A stretch of 64,000 nucleotides of DNA. Source: Macrostomum lignano (Eukaryota). The position numbers were made by a program, and so were the translations under genes. The stretch is taken from positions 67,904 to 131,903 of the forward strand of contig NIVC01000417.1 of NCBI GenBank assembly GCA_002269645.1, written 5' to 3'. Numbering within the stretch: the first letter of the stretch is position 1; the number at the start of each line of letters is the position of its first letter. Shown one piece after another: positions 3,044 through 59,256 of the stretch. The notes under the pieces were generated by a model that worked only from the letters and a program-made list of their open reading frames with translations, searched no databases and had not been told where the DNA came from.

Positions 3044-3427
<384 letters not shown>

Positions 3428-3940: not shown

Positions 3941-3960
3941 ACTTACCATAATCTATCGAG

Positions 3961-16281: not shown

Positions 16282-16314
<33 letters not shown>

Positions 16315-16335
16315 GCCTGTCTGTCTATCTATATA

Positions 16336-16370
<35 letters not shown>

Positions 16371-35242: not shown

Positions 35243-35246
35243 TGCT

Positions 35247-35436
<190 letters not shown>

Positions 35437-37728
35437 ATTACATAGATTTCACCAGATATTTTTGAGATAGAAACCATATTTTTGCATGCTAATTTTATTA
35501 CCTAGCTGGTTGAATCTGATAAATTTAATTACAACAAATCCATGATTTTAGGGTAAGTCCGGTATTTCTATTTGATTTCTTAGGAACTTTTTAATGAGCA
35601 GATTACAGTTGGACAGGAAATGTCCTGAAGGCGAGCTCACTTGTGTAGTTTTTGGCAGCACTGCAAAAAATACAGTTGTGCTAATTCAAGATTTTAACAT
35701 AGAAAATGGTGTAAAATATAATACGCTCGTAAGAATTTACAATTTAAAAAAAATATTGAATTTTACGGAAAATTAAATATAGGACACCAGCATACCTATT
35801 TTTTTCACATGTTATAGGGCTGTTTATTATTAAGAAAATCCCACCGCTGTTACCAAATTTGTTACAGGGGTCTTGGGGGAGTGAAGTTTTCCTATTGCTG
35901 ACACCAAATTGTTGTAGGGTTCTGTCTCTCTGTTTAATAATCTCACTGCTGCAACCAAATTTGTTGTAGGGTAAGTTATGGGATTCTTGGGGATTTCTGA
36001 TAGATATGCTAGTTTTATTACTAATAGGAGTAAGCCAATGGTTGCTCCTGGTGGCGTGAGTGTCCGAGCGGCAAGACACAATCTATATTAACTTAACTAG
36101 TCCGAGGGAATAAAGATGGGAGAGGGGAATTAAGGGCTTCGCGATGGATCAGAGTTGCCTGGGAAAGCACACTAATGGGGAACTTCTAAATACTAATAGG
36201 GAATGCTGACAGCATTAGATAAGAAGGCAATCTGCCTAATGAATGTGGGAAATTTCTACGAGGAAGGGTCGGGAGCGGGGATCACCTAACGGCCCGCCGC
36301 TAGCGGAGCCCATCCCACGCTAAAAATAGCCCGTTAACGGGACCCAGCCCACGGTGGGATGGGCTCCCTTAGCGGGGGCCAGCCCACGAGCGGAGAGGGA
36401 GAGGTGGGGTGGGTGTTGGGTGAGTGTGGAACGCCAGTGCGCACTAGCGTACTAGCACTGTACTAGCAATGAAGCTAGCTGAAAACACTGCACATCCGTG
36501 ACTCATTTCTCGTATATTAATGTATGCTGGATGAAGACGGCTCTTTGTCTTTCCCAACTCTCCCAAAATTAAAAAACTCCTAGAACGCATTTCGTTTTAA
36601 GCTGCAAGGAATTGTATTCTTTAAAGAAACGCGTTTCATTCAACGTATAGTTTCTACTTTTTAATACATATCATTTATCAAACTATTTGACTCAGTTGAA
36701 TCTTTAAGATCTTGAGATTTATTCTTAATACGCTCGTAAGGCTTTCGTTATTTCTTTATTCCAAAGGTAAGCAAACGTTGGTTCTTAATTTGCATTGTAC
36801 TCATTGTATTTTCTTTTATGTCTAGCTTATAATTGCAATATGCTAGGAATCTTATATTCTTCCAAAACCTTAAAGGTGGAAATATGGTCAAAGAAAAATA
36901 GTACAGGCGCAAGAAGTGAGGACGACTAGCCATCCATTTCGTTTCAAACGTAAAAGATTTAAAAAAACAAACTTAGCAAAGTAAGGTACTAAGCGAGATA
37001 TTCTAAAATTGACAGACAGGCTAATTTCCTAATTCGCAGAATCGCTGAGTCCCAGTTTTCTAATTTCTATAGATTGGACTTGTCCTTTAGCAGTTATCTT
37101 TATTTTCAGAATACTCGTATACTGCATCCGTTTGTAAATATTGTCAAAAAAGGCGGAAAAATAAATTTTGAAGTTCCGCACAAAGTTAAAAAATTACGAA
37201 TTTGAACAAAATTTAAATTCACGCGGATATTCAACATCTCACGTTCGTTAAATTCTGGCAATCTGGCGCCCCCTTTGGCACTTCATTGGCCCTGAAATAC
37301 TTGAATTGTGGTTGCTGTATGATCTTATTTCCTTTTCTAGTTTAGGAAGTCAAATAAAGAGTAAAGTAGTCAAATAAATTGATCTTATGCTGGAGTACAA
37401 TGAGATACTGAATGTTAGCATTTTAAGCAAAGCGATAATATTGTTTGGAATTCTGTTTACACTAGAGCAAACTGATCTTTCGGACCCGCTCGTATTTAAG
37501 ATAAAACTTTGAAAATAAAACAAAAATGGTAGAAAAGAAACAATTAAAAAGGGATAATAATTACCCAGTGTTGGGCACGATACTCAGAAAAAGTATCGGT
37601 TAAAAGCGATACTCTGATACCCTTTCTGAAAAAATATCGCCCTTCGATACATATCGGCTGTTTTGTGATTTTAATTTACAGTTGCTCAGGTTGCACTAAA
37701 GTCGCAATCCGCCGCAATCAACCCGCAG

Positions 37729-37902
37729 GTGACAGAATCCGCTGCCAGCAGACCTCATGGCTGGCTAGCCGTGGTTTGGCTACTCGGGACGCTGTTCACC
37801 TCCCCTGCTGAACGAGGCCATCGCTGATTTTGTCCGCTAAGATGGCGTTCCGCGACGATGGCCGGCCGGCGGCCACGTTCTGATGCTTGACGGCGCCGCC
37901 TA
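37729..37902 (+). pseudogene. Probable captured KDM3-like exon remnant (pre-JmjC region); second copy at 49584-49757
   Basis: GC-rich block bounded by CCCGCAG and GTGAGT; GVPRRWPAGGHVLMLDG weakly resembles the P(H/x)SW....LLxLxD segment preceding the KDM3 JmjC domain; in-frame TAA. Confidence 0.4.
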
Positions 37903-38021
37903 GTGAGTCATTGCATCCTACCACAACAGATAAGCACATTCCATCCATAATTGACTCGTCTAAAACAAATAGCCCCAGTCGTAATCCATAAATCCTTATC
38001 TGATTACAACTGTATCGTAAA

Positions 38022-38108
38022 TTCTGAATTGTACTTCTGAATTGTACTTCTGAATTGTACTTCTGAATTGTACTTCTGAATTGTACTTCTGAATTGTACT
38101 TCTGAATT
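38022..38108. repeat. 13-bp repeat TTCTGAATTGTAC x6.7 (also 49877-49963)
   Basis: Direct reading. Confidence 0.95.
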
Positions 38109-38525
38109 AACACCCCTCGTAAATTGAATTGCGAAGTATAAAAGTTCAGTAAAACAGAAATACTGAAGTATACTGAACTGACTAAAAATGACACTTTTAA
38201 AATATTTCGCAACAGCTGTAGCCAGGGGCGCGGATTTAGGGCTCTGGTGGGAGCGCCACTCCTCCCAGCGCTCCCTAGGAACTTTTATTACCTGGATACC
38301 TAGGTACTTCTTCCTAGGTACTAGAATTTACCTTGGCTAGTAATCGACATACTGATTTACTTTGCTAAAATTCTACAGTTTTTGACGCAAGCAAGGCTGG
38401 GCCGTTAAATCATTGATGAAACAAGTTACAACCTTAGAAACTGTAAATTAATATCACAAAACAGCCGACATGTATCGAAGCAACGAAACTAACCAGTCAA
38501 AAACACATTTTGCACTCTCATCCAG

Positions 38526-38718
38526 ATTCTGCCCGATCGCTACGAGGGCTTCTAGCGCGCTCTGCCGTTGCCGGAGTGCAGAGGGCGAGATTGCCGCCTG
38601 GCCACTCGGCTGCCGGCATTCTTTGTCCAGCCGGACCTGGAGCCCAGGATGTACAACGCCTATGGCCTGGCCGCTGCAATGTCATAGGGGCACCACAAAC
38701 CTGCACTTGGATATCGCC
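38526..38718 (+). pseudogene. KDM3: Captured KDM3/JMJD1 JmjC exon fragment, copy 1
   Basis: After TCCAG acceptor: ILPDRYEGF*RALPLPE...[23 protein letters not shown], then +1 frame GTTNLHLDI; matches KDM3 MPxRFEDL..LPLPEY..LASRLP.FVRPDLGPKMYNAYG..GTTNLHLDV. In-frame TAG at 38553 and a frameshift near 38670-38685. Symbol is family-level. Confidence 0.88.
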
Positions 38719-39140
38719 TGGATACTTTGGTCACCATAGCAACATTAATAGAAAATGAGAAGCAGATGAATGTTTATTTAAAACCAGTTTGATTACTTTT
38801 ATCCCAGATTTAGACTATGAAACACCCGATGGCCGATATGATACGAACTAAGTTTTGTTATTTTTCAGTTTCAACTGCTCCTGTCTTTTCGTGGTTCATA
38901 TTTTCAGAATTTAACTAGCAATCAGCGCCCCCCCCCTTGGGGAGCCAAAAAATGCAGTACGAGTTTTTTTAATAAACTACATGTAGATTGTAGTGTCTCT
39001 TTGCAATAACCTCAGCAATCGCTTGTAAGCGTTGACATCTCAGCAATTCCTCCCCCACAAGTCTTAACATATCAAACCCCCCCCCCTTGAAATCTGAGCG
39101 ATGACCCCCATAAGCCTTGAAATCTTAAAAAATCTGTCAA

Positions 39141-39170
39141 CCCTAACCCTAACCCTAACCCTAACCCTAA
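39141..39170. repeat. Interstitial telomere-type repeat (CCCTAA)5 (also 50997-51026)
   Basis: Five perfect hexamers. Confidence 0.9.
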
Positions 39171-39539
39171 AGCATTGCCATTTTAGTAATTCTCCCCAAG
39201 AGTCATTATAACATTACAGCATTATAGCAATTCCTCCAAGCCTTGACATCGTAGCGATTCCCAAATGAATCTCCTAACTTCGACATGACTCTTCTTTTAT
39301 ATCTACTTTCATCTGTTTAAAATGACGCTTCTTCTATTAGCGCCCCTCGTGGGGAACTAACAAAGAATGTAATAAAAAAGTGAATAAACTACATGTAGCT
39401 TCTGAATTTTACCTAGACATCTCAAAAATCCCTCATAAGCATTTACGAGTACATCTCAGTTATTCCCCGTGAGCCTTAACATCTTAGTAATTCTCCTCAA
39501 GAGTCACAGCACAGTTTCACGTGACTCTTCTTTTATTTT

Positions 39540-40230
39540 GAAATGACGCTACTTTTTGACATGACGCTTCTTTACATGATACTTATTGATTTTTACGTAA
39601 TGCTTCTATTTTTTTACATTTTTTTACTTTTTTCATTTTTCCATAAAGCTCATTTTCTTTTCTACATGACGCCTCTGTTATTTTTACCGGACGCTTTTAT
39701 GATTTTTTACATGACGCTTTTATGATTTTTTACATGACGCTTCTATGATTGTTTACATGACGCTTATATGATTGTTTACATGACGCTTCTATGATTTTTA
39801 CATGACGCTTCTATGATTTTTACATGACGCTTCTATGATTTTTACATGACGCTTCTATGATTTTTTACATGACGCTTCTATGATTTTTTACATGACGCTT
39901 ATATGATTGTTTACATGACGCTTCTATGATTTTTTACATGACGCTTCTATGATTTTTACATGACGCTTCTATGATTGTTTACATGACGCTTCTATGATTT
40001 TTTACATGACGCTTCTATGATTTTTTACATGACGCTTCTATGATTTTTACATGACGCTTATATGATTGTTTACAGGACGCTTCTATGATTTATTACATTA
40101 TGCTTGTATGATTTTTACCGGACGCTTCTATGCTTTTTTACATGACGCTTCCATGATTGTTGACATGACGCTTCTATGATCGTTTACATGACGCTTCTAT
40201 GATTGTTTGCATGACGCTTCTTTCATTTAT
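39540..40230. repeat. 23/24-bp minisatellite ACATGACGCTTCTATGATT(T/G)TTT (also ~51395-52085)
   Basis: Direct reading. Confidence 0.95.
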
Positions 40231-40569
40231 ACATGACGCTTCTTTTTTTGCTTTTATTAGCTGTGTTTTGATATTAGAATACACATACAGGCGCAGTCCC
40301 AAGGCTTTTTGCCGAATTTTGCGGACACGTTTGTGGACAAGTCTGGCTTGAGTTTATGGTTTGACAGCCACTTTGACTTGTCATTTTCTTCTACCAAAAA
40401 CCGATTAAAGGCTTTCAAACCTTTCGATAAAAGGTGCCATAAATATTTATGCGAAGACTACATCTATATTTACTTGTATAGCTAAAGAAACTAGAACGTC
40501 AGAAGCTTCCCCTCACCATTCCCCTCTGAGGGATATAAACAAGTGCATCTTATCAGGGATAAGTAATTA

Positions 40570-43500
40570 GAAATCGTGGATTCGGATTCCAACATGAGGA
40601 ACCAGGGATATAAATTTAGAAATCGTGGATTCGGATTCCGAAATGAGGAATCAGGGATATGGAATTAAGAATCGTGGATTCAGATTCCAACATGAGGAAT
40701 CAGGGATATGGATTTAGGAATTGTGGATTCGGATTCCAACATGAGGAATCAGGGATATGGATTTAGGAATTGTGGATTCGGGTTCCAAAACGAGGAATCA
40801 GGGATAGGGATTCGGAATCGGGGATTGAGATAAAAAAAAATGAGCTTCTCACGGTTCTATGATAGCTGGCAGTCTTTCAAACATTTAGAAAAAGGTGCCA
40901 TAAGCTCCTCTCTGCCTTATGAATTATGATATCTGACCCAGTCTTTCAAGTTTCTTGCAAAAGGTGCCATATGCCCTTCTGGAAAGGGAATTAAGAATCG
41001 TGGATTCGGATTCCAACATGAGGAATCAGGGATATGGAATTAGGAATCGTGGATTCGGGTTCCAAAACGAGGAATAAGGGATAGGGATTCGGAATCGGGG
41101 ATTGAGATTAAAAAATGAGCTTCTCACGGTTCTATGATAGCTGGCAGTCTTTCAAACATTTAGAAAAAGGTGCCATAATAAGCTCCTCTCTGCCTTATGA
41201 ATTATGATAGATGATCCAGTCTTTCAAACATTTAGAAAAAGGTGCCATAAGCTCCTCTCTGCCTTATGAATTATGATATCTGACCCAGTCTTTCAAGTTT
41301 CTTGCAAAAGGTGCCATATGCTTTTCTGGGAAAGGGAACTAAAAATCGTGGATTCGGATTCCAAAATGAGGAATCGGAATATGGAATTAGAAATTGTGGA
41401 TTAGGGTTCCAAAATGAGGAATCAGGGATATGGAATTAGAAATTGTGGATTCGGATTCCAAAATGAGGAATCAGGGATATGGAATTAAGAATCGTGGATT
41501 CGGATTCCAAAATGAGGAATCGGGGATATGGAATTAGAAATTGTGGATTCGGGTTCCAAAATGAGGAATCAGGGATATGGAACTAGAAATTGTGGATTCG
41601 GATTCCAACATGAGGAATCAGGGATATGGAATTAGGAATCGTGGATTCAGATTCCAACATGAGGAATCAGGGATATGGAATTAAGAATCGTGGATTCGGA
41701 TTCCAAAATGAGGAATCGGGGATAGGGATTTGGAATCGGGGATTGAGATTAAAAAATGAGCTTCTCACGGTTCTATGATAGCTGGCAGTCTTTCAAACAT
41801 TTAGAAAAAGGTGCCATAAGCTCCTCTCTGCCTTATGAATTATGATATCTGACCCAGTCTTTCAAGTTTCTTGCAAAAGGTGCCATATGCCCTTCTGGAA
41901 AGGGAATTAAGAATCGTGGATTCGGATTCCAACATGAGGAATCAGGAATATGGAATTAGGAATCGTGGATTCGGGTTCCAAAACGAGGAATAAGGGATAG
42001 GGATTCGGAATCGGGGATTGAGATTAAAAAATGAGCTTCTCACGGTTCTATGATAGCTGGCAGTCTTTCAAACATTTAGAAAAAGGTGCCATAATAAGCT
42101 CCTCTCTGCCTTATGAATTATGATAGATGATCCAGTCTTTCAAACATTTAGAAAAAGGTGCCATAAGCTCCTCTCTGCCTTATGAATTATGATATCTGAC
42201 CCAGTCTTTCAAGTTTCTTGCAAAAGGTGCCATATGCCCTTCTGGAAAGGGAATTAAGAATCGTGGATTCGGATTCCAACATGAGGAATCAGGGATATTG
42301 AATTAGGAATCGTGGATTCGGATTCCAACATGAGGAATCAGGGATATTGATTTAGGAATTGTGGATTCGGATTCCAACATGAGGAATCAGGGATAGGGAT
42401 TTAGGAATTGTGGATTCGGATTCCAAAATGAGGAATCAGGGATATGGAATTAGGAATCGTGGATTCGGATTCCAACATGAGGAATCAGGGATATGGAATT
42501 AGGAATCGTAGATTCAGATTCCAACATGAGGAATCAGGGATATGGAATTAAGAATCGTGGATTCGGATTCCAAAATGAGGAATCAGGGATATGGAATTAA
42601 GAATCGTGGATTCGGATTCCAAAATGAGGAATCAGGGATATGGAATTAGAAATTGCGGATTCGGGTTCCAAAATGAGGAATCAGGGATATGGAATTAGAA
42701 ATTGTGGATTCGGATTCCAACATGAGGAATCAGGGATATGGATTTAGGAATCGTGGATTCGGGTTCCAAAACGAGGAATCAGGGATAGGGATTCGGAATC
42801 GGGGATTGAGATTAAAAAATGAGCTTCTCACGGTTCTATGATAGCTGGCAGTCTTTCAAACATTTAGAAAAAGGTGCCATAAGCTCCTCTCTGCCTTATG
42901 AATTATGATAGATGATCCAGTCTTTCAAACATTTAGAAAAAGGTGCCATAAGCTCCTCTCTGCCTTATGAATTATGATATCTGACCCAGTCTTTCAAGTT
43001 TCTCGCAAAAGGTGCCATATGCCCTTCGGGAAAGGGAATTAAGAATCGTGGATTCGGATTCCAACATGAGGAATCAGGGATATTGAATTAGGAATCGTGG
43101 ATTCGGATTCCAACATGAGGAATCAGGGATATGGAATTAAGAATCGTGGATTCGGATTCCAAAATGAGGAATCAGGGATATGGAATTAGAAATTGTGGAT
43201 TCGGGTTCCAAAATGAGGAATCAGGGATATGGAATTAGAAATTGTGGATTCGGATTCCAACATGAGGAATCAGGGATATGGATTTAGGAATCGTGGATTC
43301 GGGTTCCAAAACGAGGAATAAGGGATAGGGATTCGGAATCGGGGATTGAGATTAAAAAATGAGCTTCTCACGGTTCTATGATAGCTGGCAGTCTTTCAAA
43401 CATTTAGAAAAAGGTGCCATAACAAGCTCCTCTCTGCCTTATGAATTATGATAGATGATCCAGTCTTTCAAACGTTTAGAAAAAGGTGCCATAAGCTCCT

Positions 43501-43620
43501 CTCTGCCTTATGAATTATGATATCTGACCCAGTCTTTCAAGTTTCTTGCAAAAGGTGCCATATGCCCTTCTGGGAAAGGGAATTAAGAATCGTGGATTGA
43601 GATTAAAAATGAGCTTTTCT
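40570..43620. repeat. Composite satellite of (49-bp)n + linker + (69-bp)2-3 blocks (also ~52425-54930)
   Basis: 49-bp unit GAATCGTGGATTCGGATTCCAACATGAGGAATCAGGGATATGGAATTAG; 69-bp unit starting AGTCTTTCAAACATTTAGAAAAAGGTGCC; linker GAGCTTCTCACGG occurs 6x in copy 1 and 5x in copy 2. Confidence 0.93.
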
Positions 43621-44309
43621 AGGTTCTATGATTTCTGGCAGTCTTTCAAACATTTAGACATTCAAACATTAAACATCAAATATTGTTTCATACATTATAT
43701 ATACTACACATTGTGGGATTACACGCAGGTGCGGTTTTAGTTGGGGGGGGGGTTAAAGGCCTATTCAAAGGCTTAATAAACTTCATTAGGAAGATTTCCG
43801 TCTGCGAAAACTCTGATTCCCGCCCTCATGCGCCCTATCTCCCCCCCCCCCCTACTCCTGTAGGTTAGGGTGATGAAAGATCAGAAGAGTGATATACTGT
43901 AAAGGAGAGGATCGCGAGATAGGACAATAGGTAGAGATACAGACTACCTATAGGGTAGGACGAGAGTAGCATGACTGAATGGCCTGGAGGAAGGTGATAA
44001 AAAGCGATAAAAGCGATATGGGCGATTCTGTGTGGCAACATAACTCATCACTAACAGTGCATCGAGTGGGTTAAAGATTAAGACAAAGGCATTGCACAAT
44101 TAAGTAGTAAAAGTAAATCATAAGTTAATTATAATAACTTCGTAAATCTCAGCAACATCGAAAAGTCGCCATCACAGAAGTCTGTGGTCGTCACTTTTGA
44201 AAGTGCAGGTGAAGTCTCTCAATCTTTGCGAGTGACGCAACGCCACGCGGCAGACTTGAGTTGAGGAATGAAGTGGGGGAGCGGTGTGCGAGGGTTGAAC
44301 GGATTAAAG

Positions 44310-44510
44310 CAGCGGTTCTCAACCTTTTTTTCAGGCGACCCCAATTTATTCACTTGCATCATTTTTAATGTTCGCGACCCCTTTTAAAGTTAATATACAT
44401 GTAATGCATTATTTTGTATGACAAACTCACACATTTCTTCGTGCTGCGACCCCCAGAAAATGGTCACGCAACCCCACTGGGGGTCGCGACCCATAGATTG
44501 AGAACCACTG
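44310..44510. mobile_element. hAT MITE nested in the giant element (also 55622-55821)
   Basis: TIRs CAGCGGTTCTCAA / TTGAGAACCACTG; perfect 8-bp TSD GATTAAAG; internal GCGACCCC motifs. Confidence 0.92.
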
Positions 44511-44814
44511 GATTAAAGCTACCTTGATTAGTTTATATCATATCTTTTATTTATAATATTTTAACTCACTCACTAATAATATATTACTCTCTGGCGCATA
44601 GAGTGGCGACTTTTCAATGTTGCTGAGTAACGATATTTAGTAGATCCTGAACTCTGAGCAAACAGTGATCTAGATGGAGTATACCTAATTGAAAAATAAT
44701 CAATAACAAAACAATAAACAATAACAAGTCCGAAAATGACACTTTTGATTTTTATAGTGCCAAATAGATATAAATCTGCGCTGATCCCTGAAGTCATGCC
44801 TTAAAGCCCAAAAA

Positions 44815-47580
44815 CGCTCGGAAAGCTCAAATCGGCGCTGGAAAGCTCAAATCGGCGCGGGAAAGCTCAAATTGGCGCCGGAAGTCAAATTTGGCGCCAG
44901 GATCACCAAATCGGCGCCAGGGATCGCCGAATCAGCGCCGGAATGCTGAAATCCGCTCGAGAAAACCTAAACCAGCGCTAGAGAGCTGAAACCAGCGCTA
45001 AAAAGCTCAAATCGGCGCGGGATAGCTCAAATTGGCGCAGGATAGCTCAAATTGGCGCAGGATAGCTCAAATTGGCGCAGGATAGCTCAAATTGGCGCCG
45101 GTCGGCGCCAGGATCACCGAATCAGCGTCGGAATGCTAAAATCAGCGCCAAAAAGCCCGGACCAGCGCTAGAAAGCTCAAATCGGCGCAGGATAGCTCAA
45201 ATTGGCGCGGGAAGTCAAATTTGGCGCCAGGATCACCAAATCGGCGCCAGGATCGCTGAATAAGAGCCGGAAAGCTGAAAACAGCGCCAAAAAGCCCGGA
45301 CCAGCGTTGGAAAGCTCAAATCGGCGCAAGATAGCTAAAATTGGCGCGTGAAAGCTCAAATTGGCGCCGGAAGTCAAATTTGGCGTCAGGATCACCAAAT
45401 CGGCGCCAGTATCGCCAAATCAGCGCTAAAAAGCCCGGACCAGCGCTGGAAAGCTCAAATAGGCGCGGGAAAGCTCAAATTGGCGCCGGAAGTCAAATTT
45501 GGCGCCAGGGTCACCAAATCAGCGCCAGAATGCTAAAATCAGCGCCTAAAAAGCCCGGACCAGCGCTAGAAAGCTCAAATCGGCGCAGGATAGCTCAAAT
45601 TGGCGCGGGAAGTCAAATTTGGCGTCAGGATCACCAAATCGGCGCCAGTATCGCCAAATCAGCGCTAAAAAGCCCGGACCAGCGCTGGAAAGCTCAAATA
45701 GGCGCGGGAAAGCTCAAATTGGCGCCGGAAGTCAAATTTGGCGCCAGGGTCACCAAATCAGCGCCAGAATGCTAAAATCAGCGCCAAAAAGCCCGGACCA
45801 GCGCTAGAAAGCTCAAATCGGCGCAGGATAGCTCAAATTGGCGCGGGAAGTCAAATTTGGCGCCAGGATCACTAAATCGGCGCCAGGATCGCTGAATAAG
45901 AGCCGGAATGCTGAAAATAGCGCCAAAAAGCCCGGATCCAGCGTTGGAAAGCTGAAATCGGCGCAAGATAGCTAAAATTGGCGCGTGAAAGCTCAAATTG
46001 GCGCCGAAAGTCAAATTTGGCGCCAGGATCGCCGAATCGGCGCCAGAATCATCAAATCGGCGCCAGGATCGCTGAATCAGCGCCGAAATGCTGAAATCAG
46101 CTCAAGAAAACCTAAACCAGCGCTAGAAAGCTCAAATCGGCGCAGGATAGCTCAAATAGGCGCGGGAAAGCTCAAATTGGCGCCGGAAGTCAAATTTGGC
46201 GCCAGGGTCACCAAATCGGCGCCAGGATCGCTGAATCAGCGCCGGAATGCTGAAATCAGCTCAAGAAAACCTAAACCAGCGCTAGAAAGCTCAAATCAGC
46301 TCTAGAAAGCTCAAATCGGCGCAGGATAGCTCAAATTGGCGCGGGAAAGCTCAATTTGGCGCTGAAAGTCAAATTTGGCGCCAGGATCACTAAATCGGCG
46401 CGAGGATCGCCAAATCAGCGTTGGAATGCTGAAATCAGCGCCATAAAGCCCGGACCAGCGCTGGAAAGCTTAACTTGGCGCGGTAAAGCTCAAATTGGCG
46501 CCGAAAGTCAAATTTGGCGCCAGGATCGCCGAATCGGCGCCAGGATCATCAAATCGGCGCCAGGATCGCTGAATCAGCGCCGAAATGCTGAAATCAGCTC
46601 AAGAAAACCTAAACCAGCGCTAGAAAGCTCAAATCGGCGCAGGATAGCGCAAATCGGCGCGGGAAAGCTCAAATTGGCGCCGGAAGTCAAATTTGGCGCT
46701 AGGATCACCAAATCGGCGCCAGGATCGCTGAATCAGCGCCGAAATGCTGAAATCAGCTCAAGAAAACCTAAACCAGCGCTAGAAAGCTCAAATCGGCGCA
46801 GGATAGCGCAAATCGGCGCGGGAAAGCTCAAATTGGCGCCGGAAGTCAAATTTGGCGCCAGGATCACCAAATCGGCGCCAGGATCGCTGAATCAGCGCCG
46901 GAATGCTGAAATTAGCTCAAGAAAACCTAAACCAGCGCTAGAAAGCTCAAATCGGCGCAGGATAGCGCAAATCGGCGCGGGAAAGCTCAAATTGGCGCCG
47001 GAAGTCAAATTTGGCGCCAGGATCACCAAATCGGCGCCAGGATCGCCGAATTAGCGCCGGAATGCTGAAATCAGCTTGAGAAGACCTTAACTAGCGCTGG
47101 AAAGCTCAAATTGGCGCTAAAAAGCCCGGACCAGCGCTTGAAAGCTCAAATAGGCGCGGGAAAGCTCAAATTGGCGCCGGAAGTCAAATTTGGCGCCAGG
47201 GTCACCAAATCGGCGCCAGGATCGCTGAATCAGCGCCGAAATGCTGAAATCAGCTCAAGAAAACCTAAACCAGCGCTAGAAAGCTCAAATCGGCGCAGGA
47301 TAGCGCAAATCGGCGCGGGAAAGCTCAAATTGGCGCCGGAAGTCTAATTTGGCGCCAGGATCACCAAATCGGCGCCAGGATCGCCGAATTAGCGCCGGAA
47401 TGCTGAAATCAGCTTGAGAAGACCTTAACTAGCGCTGGAAAGCTCAAATTGGCGCTAGAAAGCTCAAATCGGCGCAGGATAGCTCAAATTGGCGCGGGAA
47501 AGCTCAATTTGGCGCCTAAAGTCAAATTTGGCGCCAGGATCACCAAATCGGCGCCAGGATCCCCAAATCAGCGCTGGAAT
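44815..47580. repeat. GC-rich composite satellite, ~20-bp GGCGCC-containing subunits forming a 159-bp higher-order unit (also ~56126-58891)
   Basis: Subunits AAAGCTCAAAT(C/T)GGCGC; the 53-aa periodicity of the 46356 ORF equals 159 bp. Confidence 0.9.
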
Positions 47581-48137
47581 GTGCCAACGAGTGTAGAAGT
47601 GGCAGCATATATCAGCTTGCTACTTCTGGGCGCCAAGTTTAATATACCGGCGCCAATTTCAGCCTTTGGGCGCCAATTTTAGCGCCCTGGCAAGGTCAAT
47701 GCATTTAGTTCTCACTCAATGGAGCCGAAAAAAAAGTTTTTTTTCTATTTTGAATTAGTGCCATGTATCTTGACAACCAATGCGAGTCAAGTTCTGGCGT
47801 CTGCTTCTCCACAGCCCCGCAATGGCATATCCTAACCATTGTGGGCTGGCCCGCGCTAAGGGAGCCCACCCCACCGTGGGGCGGACCCCGCTAACGGGCT
47901 ATTTTTAGCGTGGGATGGGCTCCGCTAACGGGCGGCCATAAACTGGCGGGGATGCTTGGGGGAGGATCAGACTGTAAGTCCGAGGGAATAAGGCTGTACA
48001 CCTGTGCAGACAGAATGTCCACAAAGAGGGGAGAGGATTGAGGGGCGGGGCGTATATTCTCTGGGAAAGAGGAGGAAAGGGGAGCGGCTTGGCACCTAAC
48101 GGCTTCCCGCTAGCGGGACCCATCCCACGCAAAAAAT

Positions 48138-51100
48138 CACCTAACGGCCCGCCGCTAGCGGAGCCCATCCCACGCTAAAAATAGCCCGTTAACGGGACCC
48201 AGCCCACGGTGGGATGGGCTCCCTTAGCGGGGGCCAGCCCACGAGCGGAGAGGGAGAGGTGGGGTGGGTGTTGGGTGAGTGTGGAACGCCAGTGCGCACT
48301 AGCGTACTAGCACTGTACTAGCAATGAAGCTAGCTGAAAACACTGCACATCCGTGACTCATTTCTCGTATATTAATGTATGCTGGATGAAGACGGCTCTT
48401 TGTCTTTCCCAACTCTCCCAAAATTAAAAAACTCCTAGAACGCATTTCGTTTTAAGCTGCAAGGAATTGTATTCTTTAAAGAAACGCGTTTCATTCAACG
48501 TATAGTTTCTACTTTTTAATACATATCATTTATCAAACTATTTGACTCAGTTGAATCTTTAAGATCTTGAGATTTATTCTTAATACGCTCGTAAGGCTTT
48601 CGTTATTTCTTTATTCCAAAGGTAAGCAAACGTTGGTTCTTAATTTGCATTGTACTCATTGTATTTTCTTTTATGTCTAGCTTATAATTGCAATATGCTA
48701 GGAATCTTATATTCTTCCAAAACCTTAAAGGTGGAAATATGGTCAAAGAAAAATAGTACAGGCGCAAGAAGTGAGGACGACTAGCCATCCATTTCGTTTC
48801 AAACGTAAAAGATTTAAAAAAACAAACTTAGCAAAGTAAGGTACTAAGCGAGTTATTCTAAAATTGACAGACAGGCTAATTTCCTAATTCGCAGAATCGC
48901 TGAGTCCCAGTTTTCTAATTTCTATAGATTGGACTTGTCCTTTAGCAGTTATCTTTATTTTCAGAATACTCGTATACTGCATCCGTTTGTAAATATTGTC
49001 AAAAAAGGCGGAAAAATAAATTTTGAAGTTCCGCACAAAGTTAAAAAATTACGAATTTGAACAAAATTTAAATTCACGCGGATATTCAACATCTCACGTT
49101 CGTTAAATTCTGGCAATCTGGCGCCCCCTTTGGCACTTCATTGGCCCTGAAATACTTGAATTGTGGTTGCTGTATGATCTTATTTCCTTTTCTAGTTTAG
49201 GAAGTCAAATAAAGAGTAAAGTAGTCAAATAAATTGATCTTATGCTGGAGTACAATGAGATACTGAATGTTAGCATTTTAAGCAAAGCGATAATATTGTT
49301 TGGAATTCTGTTTACACTAGAGCAAACTGATCTTTCGGACCCGCTCGTATTTAAGATAAAACTTTGAAAATAAAACAAAAATGGTAGAAAAGAAACAATT
49401 AAAAAGGGATAATAATTACCCAGTGTTGGGCACGATACTCAGAAAAAGTATCGGTTAAAAGCGATACTCTGATACCCTTTCTGAAAAAATATCGCCCTTC
49501 GATACATATCGGCTGTTTTGTGATTTTAATTTACAGTTGCTCAGGTTGCACTAAAGTCGCAATCCGCCGCAATCAACCCGCAGGTGACAGAATCCGCTGC
49601 CAGCAGACCTCATGGCTGGCTAGCCGTGGTTTGGCTACTCGGGACGCTGTTCACCTCCCCTGCTGAACGAGGCCATCGCTGATTTTGTCCGCTAAGATGG
49701 CGTTCCGCGACGATGGCCGGCCGGCGGCCACGTTCTGATGCTTGACGGCGCCGCCTAGTGAGTCATTGCATCCTACCACAACAGATAAGCACATTCCATC
49801 CATAATTGACTCGTCTAAAACAAATAGCCCCAGTCGTAATCCATAAATCCTTATCTGATTACAACTGTATCGTAAATTCTGAATTGTACTTCTGAATTGT
49901 ACTTCTGAATTGTACTTCTGAATTGTACTTCTGAATTGTACTTCTGAATTGTACTTCTGAATTAACACCCCTCGTAAATTGAATTGCGAAGTATAAAAGT
50001 TCAGTAAAACAGAAATACTGAAGTATACTGAACTGACTAAAAATGACACTTTTAAAATATTTCGCAACAGCTGTAGCCAGGGGCGCGGATTTAGGGCTCT
50101 GGTGGGAGCGCCACTCCTCCCAGCGCTCCCTAGGAACTTTTATTACCTGGATACCTAGGTACTTCTTCCTAGGTACTAGAATTTACCTTGGCTAGTAATC
50201 GACATACTGATTTACTTTGCTAAAATTCTACAGTTTTTGACGCAAGCAAGGCTGGGCCGTTAAATCATTGATGAAACAAGTTACAACCTTAGAAACTGTA
50301 AATTAATATCACAAAACAGCCGACATGTATCGAAGCAACGAAACTAACCAGTCAAAAACACATTTTGCACTCTCATCCAGATTCTGCCCGATCGCTACGA
50401 GGGCTTCTAGCGCGCTCTGCCGTTGCCGGAGTGCAGAGGGCGAGATTGCCGCCTGGCCACTCGGCTGCCGGCATTCTTTGTCCAGCCGGACCTGGAGCCC
50501 AGGATGTACAACGCCTATGGCCTGGCCGCTGCAATGTCATAGGGGCACCACAAACCTGCACTTGGATATCGCCTGGATACTTTGGTCACCATAGCAACAT
50601 TAATAGAAAATGAGAAGCAGATGAATGTTTATTTAAAACCAGTTTGATTACTTTTATCCCAGATTTAGACTATGAAACACCCGATGGCCGATATGATACG
50701 AACTAAGTTTTGTTATTTTTCAGTTTCAACTGCTCCTGTCTTTTCGTGGTTCATATTTTCAGAATTTAACTAGCAATCAGCGCCCCCCCCCTTGGGGAGC
50801 CAAAAAATGCAGTACGAGTTTTTTTAATAAACTACATGTAGATTGTAGTGTCTCTTTGCAATAACCTCAGCAATCGCTTGTAAGCGTTGACATCTCAGCA
50901 ATTCCTCCCCCCACAAGTCTTAACATATCAAACCCCCCCCCCTTGAAATCTGAGCGATGACCCCCATAAGCCTTGAAATCTTAAAAAATCTGTCAACCCT
51001 AACCCTAACCCTAACCCTAACCCTAAAGCATTGCCATTTTAGTAATTCTCCCAAGAGTCATTATAACATTACAGCATTATAGCAATTCCTCCAAGCCTTG

Positions 51101-54100
51101 ACATCGTAGCGATTCCCAAATGAATCTCCTAACTTCGACATGACTCTTCTTTTATATCTACTTTCATCTGTTTAAAATGACGCTTCTTCTATTAGCGCCC
51201 CTCGTGGGGAACTAACAAAGAATGTAATAAAAAAGTGAATAAACTACATGTAGCTTCTGAATTTTACCTAGACATCTCAAAAATCCCTCATAAGCATTTA
51301 CGAGTACATCTCAGTTATTCCCCGTGAGCCTTAACATCTTAGTAATTCTCCTCAAGAGTCACAGCACAGTTTCACGTGACTCTTCTTTTATTTTGAAATG
51401 ACGCTACTTTTTGACATGACGCTTCTTTACATGATACTTATTGATTTTTACGTAATGCTTCTATTTTTTTACATTTTTTTACTTTTTTCATTTTTACATA
51501 AAGCTCATTTTCTTTTCTACATGACGCCTCTGTTATTTTTACCGGACGCTTTTATGATTTTTTACATGACGCTTTTATGATTTTTTACATGACGCTTCTA
51601 TGATTGTTTACATGACGCTTATATGATTGTTTACATGACGCTTCTATGATTTTTACATGACGCTTCTATGATTTTTACATGACGCTTCTATGATTTTTAC
51701 ATGACGCTTCTATGATTTTTTACATGACGCTTCTATGATTTTTTACATGACGCTTATATGATTGTTTACATGACGCTTCTATGATTTTTTACATGACGCT
51801 TCTATGATTTTTACATGACGCTTCTATGATTGTTTACATGACGCTTCTATGATTTTTTACATGACGCTTCTATGATTTTTTACATGACGCTTCTATGATT
51901 TTTACATGACGCTTATATGATTGTTTACAGGACGCTTCTATGATTTATTACATTATGCTTGTATGATTTTTACCGGACGCTTCTATGCTTTTTTACATGA
52001 CGCTTCCATGATTGTTGACATGACGCTTCTATGATCGTTTACATGACGCTTCTATGATTGTTTGCATGACGCTTCTTTCATTTATACATGACGCTTCTTT
52101 TTTTGCTTTTATTAGCTGTGTTTTGATATTAGAATACACATACAGGCGCAGTCCCAAGGCTTTTTGCCGAATTTTGCGGACACGTTTGTGGACAAGTCTG
52201 GCTTGAGTTTATGGTTTGACAGCCACTTTGACTTGTCATTTTCTTCTACCAAAAACCGATTAAAGGCTTTCAAACCTTTCGATAAAAGGTGCCATAAATA
52301 TTTATGCGAAGACTACATCTATATTTACTTGTATAGCTAAAGAAACTAGAACGTCAGAAGCTTCCCCTCACCATTCCCCTCTGAGGGATATAAACAAGTG
52401 CATCTTATCAGGGATAAGTAATTAGAAATCGTGGATTCGGATTCCAACATGAGGAACCAGGGATATAAATTTAGAAATCGTGGATTCGGATTCCGAAATG
52501 AGGAATCAGGGATATGGAATTAAGAATCGTGGATTCAGATTCCAACATGAGGAATCAGGGATATGGATTTAGGAATTGTGGATTCGGATTCCAACATGAG
52601 GAATCAGGGATATGGATTTAGGAATTGTGGATTCGGGTTCCAAAACGAGGAATCAGGGATAGGGATTCGGAATCGGGGATTGAGATAAAAAAAAATGAGC
52701 TTCTCACGGTTCTATGATAGCTGGCAGTCTTTCAAACATTTAGAAAAAGGTGCCATAAGCTCCTCTCTGCCTTATGAATTATGATATCTGACCCAGTCTT
52801 TCAAGTTTCTTGCAAAAGGTGCCATATGCCCTTCTGGAAAGGGAATTAAGAATCGTGGATTCGGATTCCAACATGAGGAATCAGGGATATGGAATTAGGA
52901 ATCGTGGATTCGGGTTCCAAAACGAGGAATAAGGGATAGGGATTCGGAATCGGGGATTGAGATTAAAAAATGAGCTTCTCACGGTTCTATGATAGCTGGC
53001 AGTCTTTCAAACATTTAGAAAAAGGTGCCATAATAAGCTCCTCTCTGCCTTATGAATTATGATAGATGATCCAGTCTTTCAAACATTTAGAAAAAGGTGC
53101 CATAAGCTCCTCTCTGCCTTATGAATTATGATATCTGACCCAGTCTTTCAAGTTTCTTGCAAAAGGTGCCATATGCTTTTCTGGGAAAGGGAACTAAAAA
53201 TCGTGGATTCGGATTCCAAAATGAGGAATCGGAATATGGAATTAGAAATTGTGGATTAGGGTTCCAAAATGAGGAATCAGGGATATGGAATTAGAAATTG
53301 TGGATTCGGATTCCAAAATGAGGAATCAGGGATATGGAATTAAGAATCGTGGATTCGGATTCCAAAATGAGGAATCGGGGATATGGAATTAGAAATTGTG
53401 GATTCGGGTTCCAAAATGAGGAATCAGGGATATGGAACTAGAAATTGTGGATTCGGATTCCAACATGAGGAATCAGGGATATGGAATTAGGAATCGTGGA
53501 TTCAGATTCCAACATGAGGAATCAGGGATATGGAATTAAGAATCGTGGATTCGGATTCCAAAATGAGGAATCGGGGATAGGGATTTGGAATCGGGGATTG
53601 AGATTAAAAAATGAGCTTCTCACGGTTCTATGATAGCTGGCAGTCTTTCAAACATTTAGAAAAAGGTGCCATAAGCTCCTCTCTGCCTTATGAATTATGA
53701 TATCTGACCCAGTCTTTCAAGTTTCTTGCAAAAGGTGCCATATGCCCTTCTGGAAAGGGAATTAGGAATCGTGGATTCGGATTCCAACATGAGGAATCGG
53801 GGATATGGAATTAAGAATCGTGGATTCGGATTCCAACATGAGGAATCAGGGATATGGAATTAAGAATCGTGGATTCGGATTCCAAAATGAGGAATCAGGG
53901 ATATGGAATTAAGAATCGTGGATTCGGATTCCAAAATGAGGAATCAGGGATATGGAATTAGAAATTGCGGATTCGGGTTCCAAAATGAGGAATCAGGGAT
54001 ATGGAATTAGAAATTGTGGATTCGGATTCCAACATGAGGAATCAGGGATATGGATTTAGGAATCGTGGATTCGGGTTCCAAAACGAGGAATCAGGGATAG

Positions 54101-57100
54101 GGATTCGGAATCGGGATTGAGATTAAAAAATGAGCTTCTCACGGTTCTATGATAGCTGGCAGTCTTTCAAACATTTAGAAAAAGGTGCCATAAGCTCCTC
54201 TCTGCCTTATGAATTATGATAGATGATCCAGTCTTTCAAACATTTAGAAAAAGGTGCCATAAGCTCCTCTCTGCCTTATGAATTATGATATCTGACCCAG
54301 TCTTTCAAGTTTCTCGCAAAAGGTGCCATATGCCCTTCGGGAAAGGGAATTAAGAATCGTGGATTCGGATTCCAACATGAGGAATCAGGGATATTGAATT
54401 AGGAATCGTGGATTCGGATTCCAACATGAGGAATCAGGGATATGGAATTAAGAATCGTGGATTCGGATTCCAAAATGAGGAATCAGGGATATGGAATTAG
54501 AAATTGTGGATTCGGGTTCCAAAATGAGGAATCAGGGATATGGAATTAGAAATTGTGGATTCGGATTCCAACATGAGGAATCAGGGATATGGATTTAGGA
54601 ATCGTGGATTCGGGTTCCAAAACGAGGAATAAGGGATAGGGATTCGGAATCGGGGATTGAGATTAAAAAATGAGCTTCTCACGGTTCTATGATAGCTGGC
54701 AGTCTTTCAAACATTTAGAAAAAGGTGCCATAACAAGCTCCTCTCTGCCTTATGAATTATGATAGATGATCCAGTCTTTCAAACGTTTAGAAAAAGGTGC
54801 CATAAGCTCCTCTCTGCCTTATGAATTATGATATCTGACCCAGTCTTTCAAGTTTCTTGCAAAAGGTGCCATATGCCCTTCTGGGAAAGGGAATTAAGAA
54901 TCGTGGATTGAGATTAAAAATGAGCTTTTCTAGGTTCTATGATTTCTGGCAGTCTTTCAAACATTTAGACATTCAAACATTAAACATCAAATATTGTTTC
55001 ATACATTATATATACTACACATTGTGGGATTACACGCAGGTGCGGTTTTAGTTGGGGGGGGGGTTAAAGGCCTATTCAAAGGCTTAATAAACTTCATTAG
55101 GAAGATTTCCGTCTGCGAAAACTCTGATTCCCGCCCTCATGCGCCCTATCTCCCCCCTCCCCCCTACTCCTGTAGGTTAGGGTGATGAAAGATCAGAAGA
55201 GTGATATACTGTAAAGGAGAGGATCGCGAGATAGGACAATAGGTAGAGATACAGACTACCTATAGGGTAGGACGAGAGTAGCATGACTGAATGGCCTGGA
55301 GGAAGGTGATAAAAAGCGATAAAAGCGATATGGGCGATTCTGTGTGGCAACATAACTCATCACTAACAGTGCATCGAGTGGGTTAAAGATTAAGACAAAG
55401 GCATTGCACAATTAAGTAGTAAAAGTAAATCATAAGTTAATTATAATAACTTCGTAAATCTCAGCAACATCGAAAAGTCGCCATCACAGAAGTCTGTGGT
55501 CGTCACTTTTGAAAGTGCAGGTGAAGTCTCTCAATCTTTGCGAGTGACGCAACGCCACGCGGCAGACTTGAGTTGAGGAATGAAGTGGGGGAGCGGTGTG
55601 CGAGGGTTGAACGGATTAAAGCAGCGGTTCTCAACCTTTTTTTCAGGCGACCCCAATTTATTCACTTGCATCATTTTTAATGTTCGCGACCCCTTTTAAA
55701 GTTAATATACATGTAATGCATTATTTTGTATGACAAACTCACACATTTCTTCGTGCTGCGACCCCCAGAAAATGGTCACGCAACCCCACTGGGGTCGCGA
55801 CCCATAGATTGAGAACCACTGGATTAAAGCTACCTTGATTAGTTTATATCATATCTTTTATTTATAATATTTTAACTCACTCACTAATAATATATTACTC
55901 TCTGGCGCATAGAGTGGCGACTTTTCAATGTTGCTGAGTAACGATATTTAGTAGATCCTGAACTCTGAGCAAACAGTGATCTAGATGGAGTATACCTAAT
56001 TGAAAAATAATCAATAACAAAACAATAAACAATAACAAGTCCGAAAATGACACTTTTGATTTTTATAGTGCCAAATAGATATAAATCTGCGCTGATCCCT
56101 GAAGTCATGCCTTAAAGCCCAAAAACGCTCGGAAAGCTCAAATCGGCGCTGGAAAGCTCAAATCGGCGCGGGAAAGCTCAAATTGGCGCCGGAAGTCAAA
56201 TTTGGCGCCAGGATCACCAAATCGGCGCCAGGGATCGCCGAATCAGCGCCGGAATGCTGAAATCCGCTCGAGAAAACCTAAACCAGCGCTAGAGAGCTGA
56301 AACCAGCGCTAAAAAGCTCAAATCGGCGCGGGATAGCTCAAATTGGCGCAGGATAGCTCAAATTGGCGCAGGATAGCTCAAATTGGCGCAGGATAGCTCA
56401 AATTGGCGCCGGTCGGCGCCAGGATCACCGAATCAGCGTCGGAATGCTAAAATCAGCGCCAAAAAGCCCGGACCAGCGCTAGAAAGCTCAAATCGGCGCA
56501 GGATAGCTCAAATTGGCGCGGGAAGTCAAATTTGGCGCCAGGATCACCAAATCGGCGCCAGGATCGCTGAATAAGAGCCGGAAAGCTGAAAACAGCGCCA
56601 AAAAGCCCGGACCAGCGTTGGAAAGCTCAAATCGGCGCAAGATAGCTAAAATTGGCGCGTGAAAGCTCAAATTGGCGCCGGAAGTCAAATTTGGCGTCAG
56701 GATCACCAAATCGGCGCCAGTATCGCCAAATCAGCGCTAAAAAGCCCGGACCAGCGCTGGAAAGCTCAAATAGGCGCGGGAAAGCTCAAATTGGCGCCGG
56801 AAGTCAAATTTGGCGCCAGGGTCACCAAATCAGCGCCAGAATGCTAAAATCAGCGCCTAAAAAGCCCGGACCAGCGCTAGAAAGCTCAAATCGGCGCAGG
56901 ATAGCTCAAATTGGCGCGGGAAGTCAAATTTGGCGTCAGGATCACCAAATCGGCGCCAGTATCGCCAAATCAGCGCTAAAAAGCCCGGACCAGCGCTGGA
57001 AAGCTCAAATAGGCGCGGGAAAGCTCAAATTGGCGCCGGAAGTCAAATTTGGCGCCAGGGTCACCAAATCAGCGCCAGAATGCTAAAATCAGCGCCAAAA

Positions 57101-59256
57101 AGCCCGGACCAGCGCTAGAAAGCTCAAATCGGCGCAGGATAGCTCAAATTGGCGCGGGAAGTCAAATTTGGCGCCAGGATCACTAAATCGGCGCCAGGAT
57201 CGCTGAATAAGAGCCGGAATGCTGAAAATAGCGCCAAAAAGCCCGGATCCAGCGTTGGAAAGCTGAAATCGGCGCAAGATAGCTAAAATTGGCGCGTGAA
57301 AGCTCAAATTGGCGCCGAAAGTCAAATTTGGCGCCAGGATCGCCGAATCGGCGCCAGAATCATCAAATCGGCGCCAGGATCGCTGAATCAGCGCCGAAAT
57401 GCTGAAATCAGCTCAAGAAAACCTAAACCAGCGCTAGAAAGCTCAAATCGGCGCAGGATAGCTCAAATAGGCGCGGGAAAGCTCAAATTGGCGCCGGAAG
57501 TCAAATTTGGCGCCAGGGTCACCAAATCGGCGCCAGGATCGCTGAATCAGCGCCGGAATGCTGAAATCAGCTCAAGAAAACCTAAACCAGCGCTAGAAAG
57601 CTCAAATCAGCTCTAGAAAGCTCAAATCGGCGCAGGATAGCTCAAATTGGCGCGGGAAAGCTCAATTTGGCGCTGAAAGTCAAATTTGGCGCCAGGATCA
57701 CTAAATCGGCGCGAGGATCGCCAAATCAGCGTTGGAATGCTGAAATCAGCGCCATAAAGCCCGGACCAGCGCTGGAAAGCTTAACTTGGCGCGGTAAAGC
57801 TCAAATTGGCGCCGAAAGTCAAATTTGGCGCCAGGATCGCCGAATCGGCGCCAGGATCATCAAATCGGCGCCAGGATCGCTGAATCAGCGCCGAAATGCT
57901 GAAATCAGCTCAAGAAAACCTAAACCAGCGCTAGAAAGCTCAAATCGGCGCAGGATAGCGCAAATCGGCGCGGGAAAGCTCAAATTGGCGCCGGAAGTCA
58001 AATTTGGCGCTAGGATCACCAAATCGGCGCCAGGATCGCTGAATCAGCGCCGAAATGCTGAAATCAGCTCAAGAAAACCTAAACCAGCGCTAGAAAGCTC
58101 AAATCGGCGCAGGATAGCGCAAATCGGCGCGGGAAAGCTCAAATTGGCGCCGGAAGTCAAATTTGGCGCCAGGATCACCAAATCGGCGCCAGGATCGCTG
58201 AATCAGCGCCGGAATGCTGAAATTAGCTCAAGAAAACCTAAACCAGCGCTAGAAAGCTCAAATCGGCGCAGGATAGCGCAAATCGGCGCGGGAAAGCTCA
58301 AATTGGCGCCGGAAGTCAAATTTGGCGCCAGGATCACCAAATCGGCGCCAGGATCGCCGAATTAGCGCCGGAATGCTGAAATCAGCTTGAGAAGACCTTA
58401 ACTAGCGCTGGAAAGCTCAAATTGGCGCTAAAAAGCCCGGACCAGCGCTTGAAAGCTCAAATAGGCGCGGGAAAGCTCAAATTGGCGCCGGAAGTCAAAT
58501 TTGGCGCCAGGGTCACCAAATCGGCGCCAGGATCGCTGAATCAGCGCCGAAATGCTGAAATCAGCTCAAGAAAACCTAAACCAGCGCTAGAAAGCTCAAA
58601 TCGGCGCAGGATAGCGCAAATCGGCGCGGGAAAGCTCAAATTGGCGCCGGAAGTCTAATTTGGCGCCAGGATCACCAAATCGGCGCCAGGATCGCCGAAT
58701 TAGCGCCGGAATGCTGAAATCAGCTTGAGAAGACCTTAACTAGCGCTGGAAAGCTCAAATTGGCGCTAGAAAGCTCAAATCGGCGCAGGATAGCTCAAAT
58801 TGGCGCGGGAAAGCTCAATTTGGCGCCTAAAGTCAAATTTGGCGCCAGGATCACCAAATCGGCGCCAGGATCCCCAAATCAGCGCTGGAATGTGCCAACG
58901 AGTGTAGAAGTGGCAGCATATATCAGCTTGCTACTTCTGGGCGCCAAGTTTAATATACCGGCGCCAATTTCAGCCTTTGGGCGCCAATTTTAGCGCCCTG
59001 GCAAGGTCAATGCATTTAGTTCTCACTCAATGGAGCCGAAAAAAAAGTTTTTTTTCTATTTTGAATTAGTGCCATGTATCTTGACAACCAATGCGAGTCA
59101 AGTTCTGGCGTCTGCTTCTCCACAGCCCCGCAATGGCATATCCTAACCATTGTGGGCTGGCCCGCGCTAAGGGAGCCCACCCCACCGTGGGGCGGACCCC
59201 GCTAACGGGCTATTTTTAGCGTGGGATGGGCTCCGCTAACGGGCGGCCATAAACTG
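48138..59256. mobile_element. Giant non-autonomous TIR DNA transposon, copy 2 (11,119 bp)
   Basis: Same termini as copy 1; perfect 8-bp TSD CAAAAAAT at 48130-48137 and 59257-59264; offset to copy 1 is 11855 before and 11311 after a 544-bp indel. Confidence 0.9.
50381..50573 (+). pseudogene. KDM3: Captured KDM3/JMJD1 JmjC exon fragment, copy 2
   Basis: Same sequence as 38526-38718, including the lesions. Confidence 0.88.

Follow-up and report, generated by a model that had tools for sequence, protein, structure and literature searches.

In a 64,000-nucleotide stretch of the Macrostomum lignano genome, referred to here as the window (contig NIVC01000417.1 of assembly GCA_002269645.1, forward-strand positions 67,904 to 131,903; coordinates below count from its first base), two neighbouring units were found that are very probably two copies of one non-autonomous subfamily of a class II DNA transposon, a cut-and-paste element bounded by terminal inverted repeats (TIRs). 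The units lie in direct orientation, as determined by repeat finding, direct reading and self-BLAST, and each is flanked by a target-site duplication (TSD) of its own. Judged from the sequence, unit 2 appears as a nested insertion in the TIR of an older, diverged member of the same family, called E3 here, and two separate integration events appear to be the only reading that fits the junctions. The element is real, unusually large and satellite-rich, and it is of a kind already known, with no new mechanism. The features that carry this reading are as follows.

36283..47945, + strand: unit 1, a complete non-autonomous TIR element of 11,663 bp (self-BLAST and global alignment to unit 2).
48138..59256, + strand: unit 2, a second complete copy of 11,119 bp, apparently nested in the E3 terminal repeat.
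36275..36282, unstranded: left copy of the unit 1 TSD, GCGGGGAT (direct reading; same as 47946-47953).
47946..47953, unstranded: right copy of the unit 1 TSD, GCGGGGAT (direct reading).
48130..48137, unstranded: left copy of the unit 2 TSD, CAAAAAAT (the last bases of the 45-bp E3 fragment).
59257..59264, unstranded: right copy of the unit 2 TSD, CAAAAAAT (direct reading).
48093..48137, + strand: E3 left-end fragment, the first 45 bp of the E3 left TIR, ending in CAAAAAAT and aligning to unit 1 positions 1-45.
59265..60280, + strand: E3 continuation, the rest of the left TIR and the subterminal region (BLAST and MAFFT of the joined sequence against unit 1), with homology fading near 60280.

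The TSDs are perfect, 8 bp long and different in sequence for each unit (GCGGGGAT vs CAAAAAAT). The spacer between the units (47946-48137) was found to measure 192 bp, one duplication copy at either end included, and the junction reads, in order, right TIR, GCGGGGAT, 176 bp, CAAAAAAT and left TIR, with the two target sites 184 bp apart. The chance of two perfect 8-bp matches at fixed positions is about (4^-8)^2, roughly 2e-10, an estimate that takes the boundaries as fixed independently by the three-way homology of unit 1, unit 2 and E3. Homology between the copies stops precisely at the terminal repeats, and the spacer gave no BLAST match and no significant similarity when compared with the upstream flank. 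By eye, unit 1 and E3 have similar left flanks (gtccgagggaataa..., ctgggaaag), which was considered as a sign of a longer duplicated block and rejected; the local alignment was weak, gappy and low in complexity (G/A-rich).

The nested position of unit 2 was read from E3. When 48093-48137 was joined to 59265 onward, the product was found to be colinear with unit 1 positions 1 to ~1017 by BLAST and MAFFT, with BLAST against unit 1 covering positions 1-973 at 77%. The rejoined E3 starts with the same CACCTAACGG as the units and holds one CAAAAAAT, aligned opposite CTAAAAAT of unit 1. Excision of unit 2 together with one duplication copy restores the E3 terminus exactly, in a form alignable with unit 1, and because removal of unit 2 restores a family terminus, transposition is favoured over tandem duplication; the empty site is a paralogous one only, the uninterrupted form of the E3 TIR being seen in units 1 and 2. 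Unit 2 occupies the A-rich linker that separates the first subrepeat of the E3 TIR from the second. Unit 1 ends 147 bp upstream of the first base of E3, and three family members are crowded within 350 bp. Identity between E3 and unit 1 was 84-96% in alignment columns 1-400, TIR included, and ~55-70% thereafter, with similarity gone after ~1 kb; conserved ends with a diverged interior are the pattern expected if the ends are required in cis. Within the window, TIR match searches detected no right end for E3. Just past the loss of similarity between E3 and unit 1 lies a 230-bp near-perfect palindrome (60374-60603; 84-nt arms, 99% complementary, and a 62-nt loop), which looks like a miniature inverted-repeat transposable element (MITE) or foldback insertion.

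The TIRs of the two units are identical and lie as follows.

36283..36387, + strand: left TIR of unit 1, 105 bp, 91/105 identical to the reverse complement of 47841-47945; a hairpin-forming palindrome.
47841..47945, - strand: right TIR of unit 1, with three 19-bp subrepeats of the pattern TTAGCGG..CC..CCCAC.
48138-48242 and 59152-59256, unstranded: TIRs of unit 2, identical to those of unit 1.

The two ends match at 91 of 105 positions overall and at 87 of 97 across positions 9-105. The units begin with CACCTAAC... at the left and finish with ...ATAAACTG at the right, and the outer 8 bp compare as CACCTAAC at the left vs CAGTTTAT for the reverse complement of the right end; the family termini can be written as CACCTAACGG (left) and CCATAAACTG (right). 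Each TIR consists of an imperfect 8-bp tip followed by three 19-bp direct subrepeats at ~18, ~52 and ~87, spaced by ~35 bp, which at the right end read TTAGCGGAGCCCATCCCAC, TTAGCGGGGTCCGCCCCAC and TTAGCGCGGGCCAGCCCAC. The subrepeat pattern is confined to these termini within the window, and the 19-bp subrepeats are likely to be transposase binding sites. Each terminus is also internally palindromic and folds as single-strand DNA into a ~90-nt hairpin, with fold z-scores of -4.6 (left TIR) and -3.4, vs +0.55 for a control sequence nearby. The window contains a 27-nt core of the TIR five times, where none was expected.

The global alignment of units 1 and 2 showed six substitutions over its whole length. 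Four of these lie together within 30 bp, next to a large indel of the 49-bp satellite, and could be noise from alignment or conversion; the remaining two fall in unique sequence. Five 1-bp indels were also found, every one in a C or G homopolymer, and all 1-bp differences resemble the homopolymer errors of long reads. The large indel measures 543 bp (unit 1 41903-42445, absent from unit 2) and lies inside the 49/69-bp higher-order array, the net difference in length between the units being 544 bp. The 20-bp minisatellite (2.7 kb) showed no difference between the units in the alignment. The initial annotation, made from the letters alone, had described two near-identical units of 11.1-11.7 kb with few substitutions and homopolymer indels and a 544-bp difference, bounded by imperfect inverted repeats of ~105 bp, separated by a 192-bp spacer and each provided with its own distinct and perfect 8-bp TSD, and all of this was borne out by the global alignment, the 91/105 identity of the TIRs, the measured spacer and direct reading. 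Its claim of two separate insertions instead of a segmental duplication was likewise upheld by the distinct TSDs, by a spacer unlike the upstream flank and by the interruption of E3 by unit 2. E3, whose left end is split by unit 2, and the tandem-repeat share of over half of each unit had both escaped that annotation.

Several observations weigh against reading the units as recently transposed copies of a mobile family. Only four of the eight outermost positions are inverted between the two ends, and these tips match the terminal motif of neither hAT nor P. The window yielded no autonomous partner, its sole transposase relic being without the TIR of the element. Only three family members are visible in the window, too few to speak for genome-wide mobility. 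Polishing with multi-mapped reads may have inflated the near-identity of units 1 and 2, as may gene conversion between these neighbours, which lie 192 bp apart, and because of this the description 'very recent' is an inference only. M. lignano assemblies have, moreover, been reported as redundant and difficult (PMC5730564, PMC12801592).

Gene conversion supplies one unlikely alternative, in which the two insertions would be old and kept identical by conversion, and the family perhaps long dead. Copies 192 bp apart in the same orientation are ideal for conversion, and the profile of E3, 84-96% over the first 400 columns and far more diverged inward, could also reflect partial conversion. Unbroken conversion tracts over 11 kb are rare, however; the TIRs and both duplications are intact and perfect, without decay, and a family of long interspersed nuclear elements (LINEs) that is 99-100% identical shows that transposable element activity in this genome is generally recent. 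An assembly artefact was judged quite improbable: one insertion, or two allelic or homeologous insertions from different molecules, would have been stitched or duplicated in a repeat-rich and partly tetraploid genome, and the copies homogenised by polishing. Besides the redundancy of the assemblies, this idea draws on the five 1-bp differences, all in homopolymer length and typical of long-read error, and on the absence of any difference over the 2.7-kb minisatellite, which is suspiciously clean. The contiguity of right TIR, spacer and left TIR, on the other hand, is readable only from a molecule with both insertions, each copy has a distinct target site, properly duplicated, and the copies can be told apart by the 543-bp structural difference and the two substitutions in unique sequence. 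The statement in the initial annotation that the units are not an assembly repeat was nevertheless too strong, since sequence alone cannot show this and the M. lignano assembly is redundant (PMC5730564, PMC12801592). Duplication of a single 11-12 kb block, tandem or segmental, by unequal crossing-over or replication slippage, with the inverted repeats included in the block and the short direct repeats a coincidence, would suit nearly identical copies in the same orientation 192 bp apart in a region rich in tandem repeats, which promote unequal exchange, but it is very improbable because it predicts a flank-derived spacer and one shared junction, whereas the spacer is unlike the upstream flank, each copy stops exactly at the TIRs with its own different 8-bp duplication, and removal of unit 2 restores the family terminus. 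Two other readings were rejected: a composite or macro-transposon of two independent MITEs, as the ~1 kb at the left end forms a conserved module common with E3 and not a solitary short element, and a Helitron, Maverick or Transib, since TIRs and an 8-bp duplication are present and genes absent.

The interior of the transposon units consists of satellites and unique non-coding DNA. The parts of unit 1 are listed below; the tandem arrays were delimited with Tandem Repeats Finder (TRF).

36388..37300, + strand: left subterminal region, conserved with E3 (MAFFT of unit 1 against the rejoined E3).
37642..38480 (unit 2: 49497-50335), unstranded: 839-bp segment with 52-nt inverted repeats, 92% complementary.
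39658..40243, + strand: 23-bp minisatellite, ~26 copies (TRF).
40552..43562, + strand: 49-bp and 69-bp repeats interleaved in a higher-order array of 3 kb (TRF; internal BLAST offsets ~916 bp).
Between the 49/69-bp array and the 20-bp minisatellite, unstranded: unique sequence of 1.25 kb (TRF).
44820..47581, + strand: 20-bp minisatellite of 2.76 kb, ~135 copies with higher-order periods of 119-497 bp (TRF).
Right of the 20-bp minisatellite, unstranded: right subterminal sequence of ~260 bp (TRF).

Tandem arrays make up 6,446 of the 11,663 bp of unit 1 (55%), and the three arrays (23-bp, 49/69-bp and 20-bp), together ~6.4 kb, are unrelated to one another. The 839-bp segment, which holds a perfect microsatellite (13 bp x 6.7) at 38022-38108 by TRF, may be an older nested MITE now travelling inside the large element; no clear target-site duplication was found for it at 37642-38480. 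Every non-satellite part was translated in six frames, X standing in for stops, and Pfam searches of these translations returned nothing above threshold, the best match being LysM_RLK (E = 0.078, 13.5 bits vs a 27-bit cut-off). Similarly, 43 concatenated open reading frames (ORFs; 2,913 aa) gave no homolog at E <= 0.001 among 5.8 billion proteins, a database that includes M. lignano proteins; this search covered ORFs of at least 45 aa, and fragments in shorter ORFs could escape it but not the six-frame Pfam scans. Rfam and tRNA scans over the whole window were empty. The earlier statement that no transposase lies inside was thus confirmed by the Pfam and 43-ORF searches, and with no transposase, domain or homolog inside, the element is non-autonomous. 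Its description as Pack-type or cargo-carrying was not sustained, because no captured host gene fragment was found by the Pfam, protein, Rfam and tRNA searches and the passenger is minisatellite and unique non-coding DNA. Pack-type elements hold captured host gene fragments between their terminal repeats (PMC5499845), and internal tandem arrays in transposable elements are well documented (PMC12628747, PMC4079207).

The superfamily was considered from the TSD length and from the ends. The TIRs of hAT elements are usually ~10-30 bp long with a 5'-YARNG terminal motif, and the terminal motif of P elements is CANRG. Transposases of hAT combine a DDE core with a C-terminal hAT dimerisation domain, and those of the P superfamily have a THAP domain and bind subterminal sites. 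The 8-bp duplication of hAT was found at both units, and the short TIR and YARNG motif were not, the termini being CACCT and CAGTT and the TIRs 105 bp. Duplications of 8 bp are usual in hAT and Zisupton (PMC12730594) and occur in the P superfamily (PMC5932611), and Mutator-like elements (MULEs) make duplications of 8-10 bp and have TIRs typically >100 bp with subterminal repeats (PMC5499845). The 105-bp TIR with subterminal repeats and the 8-bp duplication agree with a MULE on both counts, the duplication length fits P (PMC5932611), and Zisupton agrees in duplication length and in the presence of TIRs (PMC12730594). The original assignment to hAT or P therefore proved too narrow, since MULE (PMC5499845) and Zisupton (PMC12730594) fit equally and CACCT/CAGTT match neither YARNG nor CANRG. 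The long TIRs, each with three 19-bp subrepeats, are no less like MULE or foldback-type ends than like those of hAT. As a rough division, hAT and MULE are the leading candidates and were rated alike, neither with a majority of the weight; Zisupton or another superfamily is less likely, and P is the least likely of those named.

The only transposase sequence found in the window was the following relic.

19007-20089, - strand: hAT-type transposase relic, frameshifted, in an intron of a MAP4K-type kinase gene.

An exhaustive phmmer search with the relic recovered 145 homologs, and eight of the ten long ones tested with Pfam contained Dimer_Tnp_hAT; Pfam and PDB sequence searches with the relic itself gave no match. 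This decayed copy shows that hAT transposases have lived in this genome, and it was rejected as the autonomous partner, having no TIR in common with the element. Searches further afield were made with parts of the element. The TIR core gave no match in metagenome and viral contigs, as expected of an animal sequence, which says little on other copies, and a conserved subterminal 32-mer gave none in metagenome contigs. Exact look-up of two ORFs of the units in an assembly collection without eukaryotic genomes returned no match, which likewise says little.

Comparison with known systems placed the units close to several of them. Many MULEs have G-rich starts, whereas the units start with CA. Like non-autonomous MULEs, the units carry unrelated internal DNA; as a difference from MULEs, no MURA-type transposase was found linked to their ends within the window. 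The MULE Muta1 of Aedes aegypti, with foldback-type TIRs, makes duplications of 8 or 9 bp and has a 145-bp TIR with 12-bp subrepeats and an imperfect terminal motif (PMC5499845), an architecture very like that of the ends described here, but it measures 3.2 kb vs 11-12 kb for the units. The Pack-MULEs of plants differ in carrying host gene fragments, of which the units have none. The 8-bp duplication and the imperfect outermost terminal bases are shared with hAT elements (Ds-like, hAT-N), from which the units are set apart by TIRs of 105 bp and by CACCT/CAGTT, and we know of no hAT transposase with these ends. In Ac/Ds, the transposase binds AAACGG hexamers, of which the TARCGG-bearing subrepeats are reminiscent, and short-range reinsertion near the donor is classic; the clustering seen here and the CA-starting imperfect tips are reminiscent of Ac/Ds as well. 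Galileo makes 7-bp duplications. With P and foldback-like elements such as Galileo the units share the 8-bp duplication (P), and the TIRs of Galileo, too, are long and structured, each with several sites bound by transposase (PMC3688188, PMC4168063). In P and hobo, repeated insertion at one favoured site yields head-to-tail dimers whose junction contains the duplication (PMC5932611), whereas the units use two different target sites 184 bp apart and not a single site. Conserved ends around central satellite-like arrays that vary in copy number are also found in tandem-repeat transposable elements (PMC12628747, PMC4079207, PMC8268682), namely the MITEs miDNA4 and Xstir in Xenopus, Tetris in Drosophila virilis and Helentrons in oysters, which spread satellite seeds through the genome. 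Those elements are mostly <3 kb or rolling-circle, in contrast to an 11-12 kb TIR element with three unrelated arrays.

A cut-and-paste mechanism can be proposed for the two insertions. A transposase encoded elsewhere in the genome would recognise the ends and act in trans via the 19-bp subrepeats, and the element would be excised and then integrated with a staggered 8-bp cut. Two integrations would have taken place within ~200 bp, one in ordinary DNA (GCGGGGAT) and one in the A-rich linker of the E3 TIR (CAAAAAAT), a clustering that might best be explained by short-range 'local hopping' or by an insertion preference for the family's own ends. Copy number could have been gained by transposition after replication or by templated repair of the donor, and the 543-bp difference could have arisen from slippage or unequal exchange in the 49/69-bp array, later or concomitantly. 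It is a tentative and rather doubtful extension of this proposal that the family is currently active in M. lignano and can move at least 11.6 kb of passenger DNA, that its copies are a main vehicle seeding minisatellite arrays across this genome, which is unusually rich in tandem repeats, and that its transposase perhaps belongs to a lineage whose ends are unusual in forming hairpins and bearing three subrepeats; if true, an endogenous tool for large-cargo transgenesis in this model flatworm would be possible.

The M. lignano literature that was found deals with overall repeat content, with long terminal repeat (LTR) retrotransposons and with the imported tool piggyBac (PMC12801592, PMC5730564, PMC8717057), and in it the DNA transposons of this animal are almost undescribed. 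A very recent cut-and-paste example suggests a working endogenous transposase in a model animal where transgenesis is laborious. Over half of the genome has been reported as repetitive, with 15% simple and tandem repeat, and the assembly as redundant via extra chromosomes and hidden tetraploidy (PMC5730564, PMC12801592). The element shows how several unrelated minisatellite arrays (~6.4 kb) can reach new sites in one step, which bears on the 15% of simple and tandem repeat, and near-identical neighbours of 11 kb can mislead assembly, read mapping and duplication calling in a genome already complicated by the hidden tetraploidy.

The remainder of the window holds genes, a retrotransposon and further satellites. 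A LINE ORF at 23479-25965 on the + strand (828 aa, uninterrupted, with reverse transcriptase and RNase H, 5' truncated) was found to be 95-100% identical to many M. lignano UniRef proteins, which leaves little doubt about the host species, and its family appears to be very young and is probably active. On the - strand, a MAP4K-type kinase gene occupies 11600-22300, with the following exons.

22054-22272, 18437-18706, 17012-17383 and 16410-16829, - strand: MAP4K kinase-domain exons (domain searches).
~15.6-16.2 kb, - strand: MAP4K poly-Q exon.
12744-13352 and 11619-12266, - strand: MAP4K CNH-domain exons.

The best identity obtained with the MAP4K kinase query was ~65%, and the proteins returned were all <300 aa, vs ~800-900 aa for full-length MAP4Ks; the word-based candidate step of the search seems biased to short proteins, and the missing close matches carry little weight. 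Long minisatellites crowd the introns of this gene (34-bp x 58 at 13487-15472 and 26-bp x 45 at 10459-11628). Upstream of the insertions, a PAN/apple-domain ORF with a signal-peptide-like start (30606-31355, + strand) and a fibrinogen C-terminal domain fragment (32293-32739, + strand) are possibly exons of one secreted lectin-like gene. The satellite-rich character of the window agrees with the tandem-repeat content reported for the genome (PMC5730564). Homogeneous micro- and minisatellites unrelated to the arrays of the element were also found at 3044-5117, 6898-7497 and 34941-35434, comprising TCTA x 96, 27-bp x 43 (99% identity), 34-bp x 18, and 27-bp x 11 followed by CTGT x 47.

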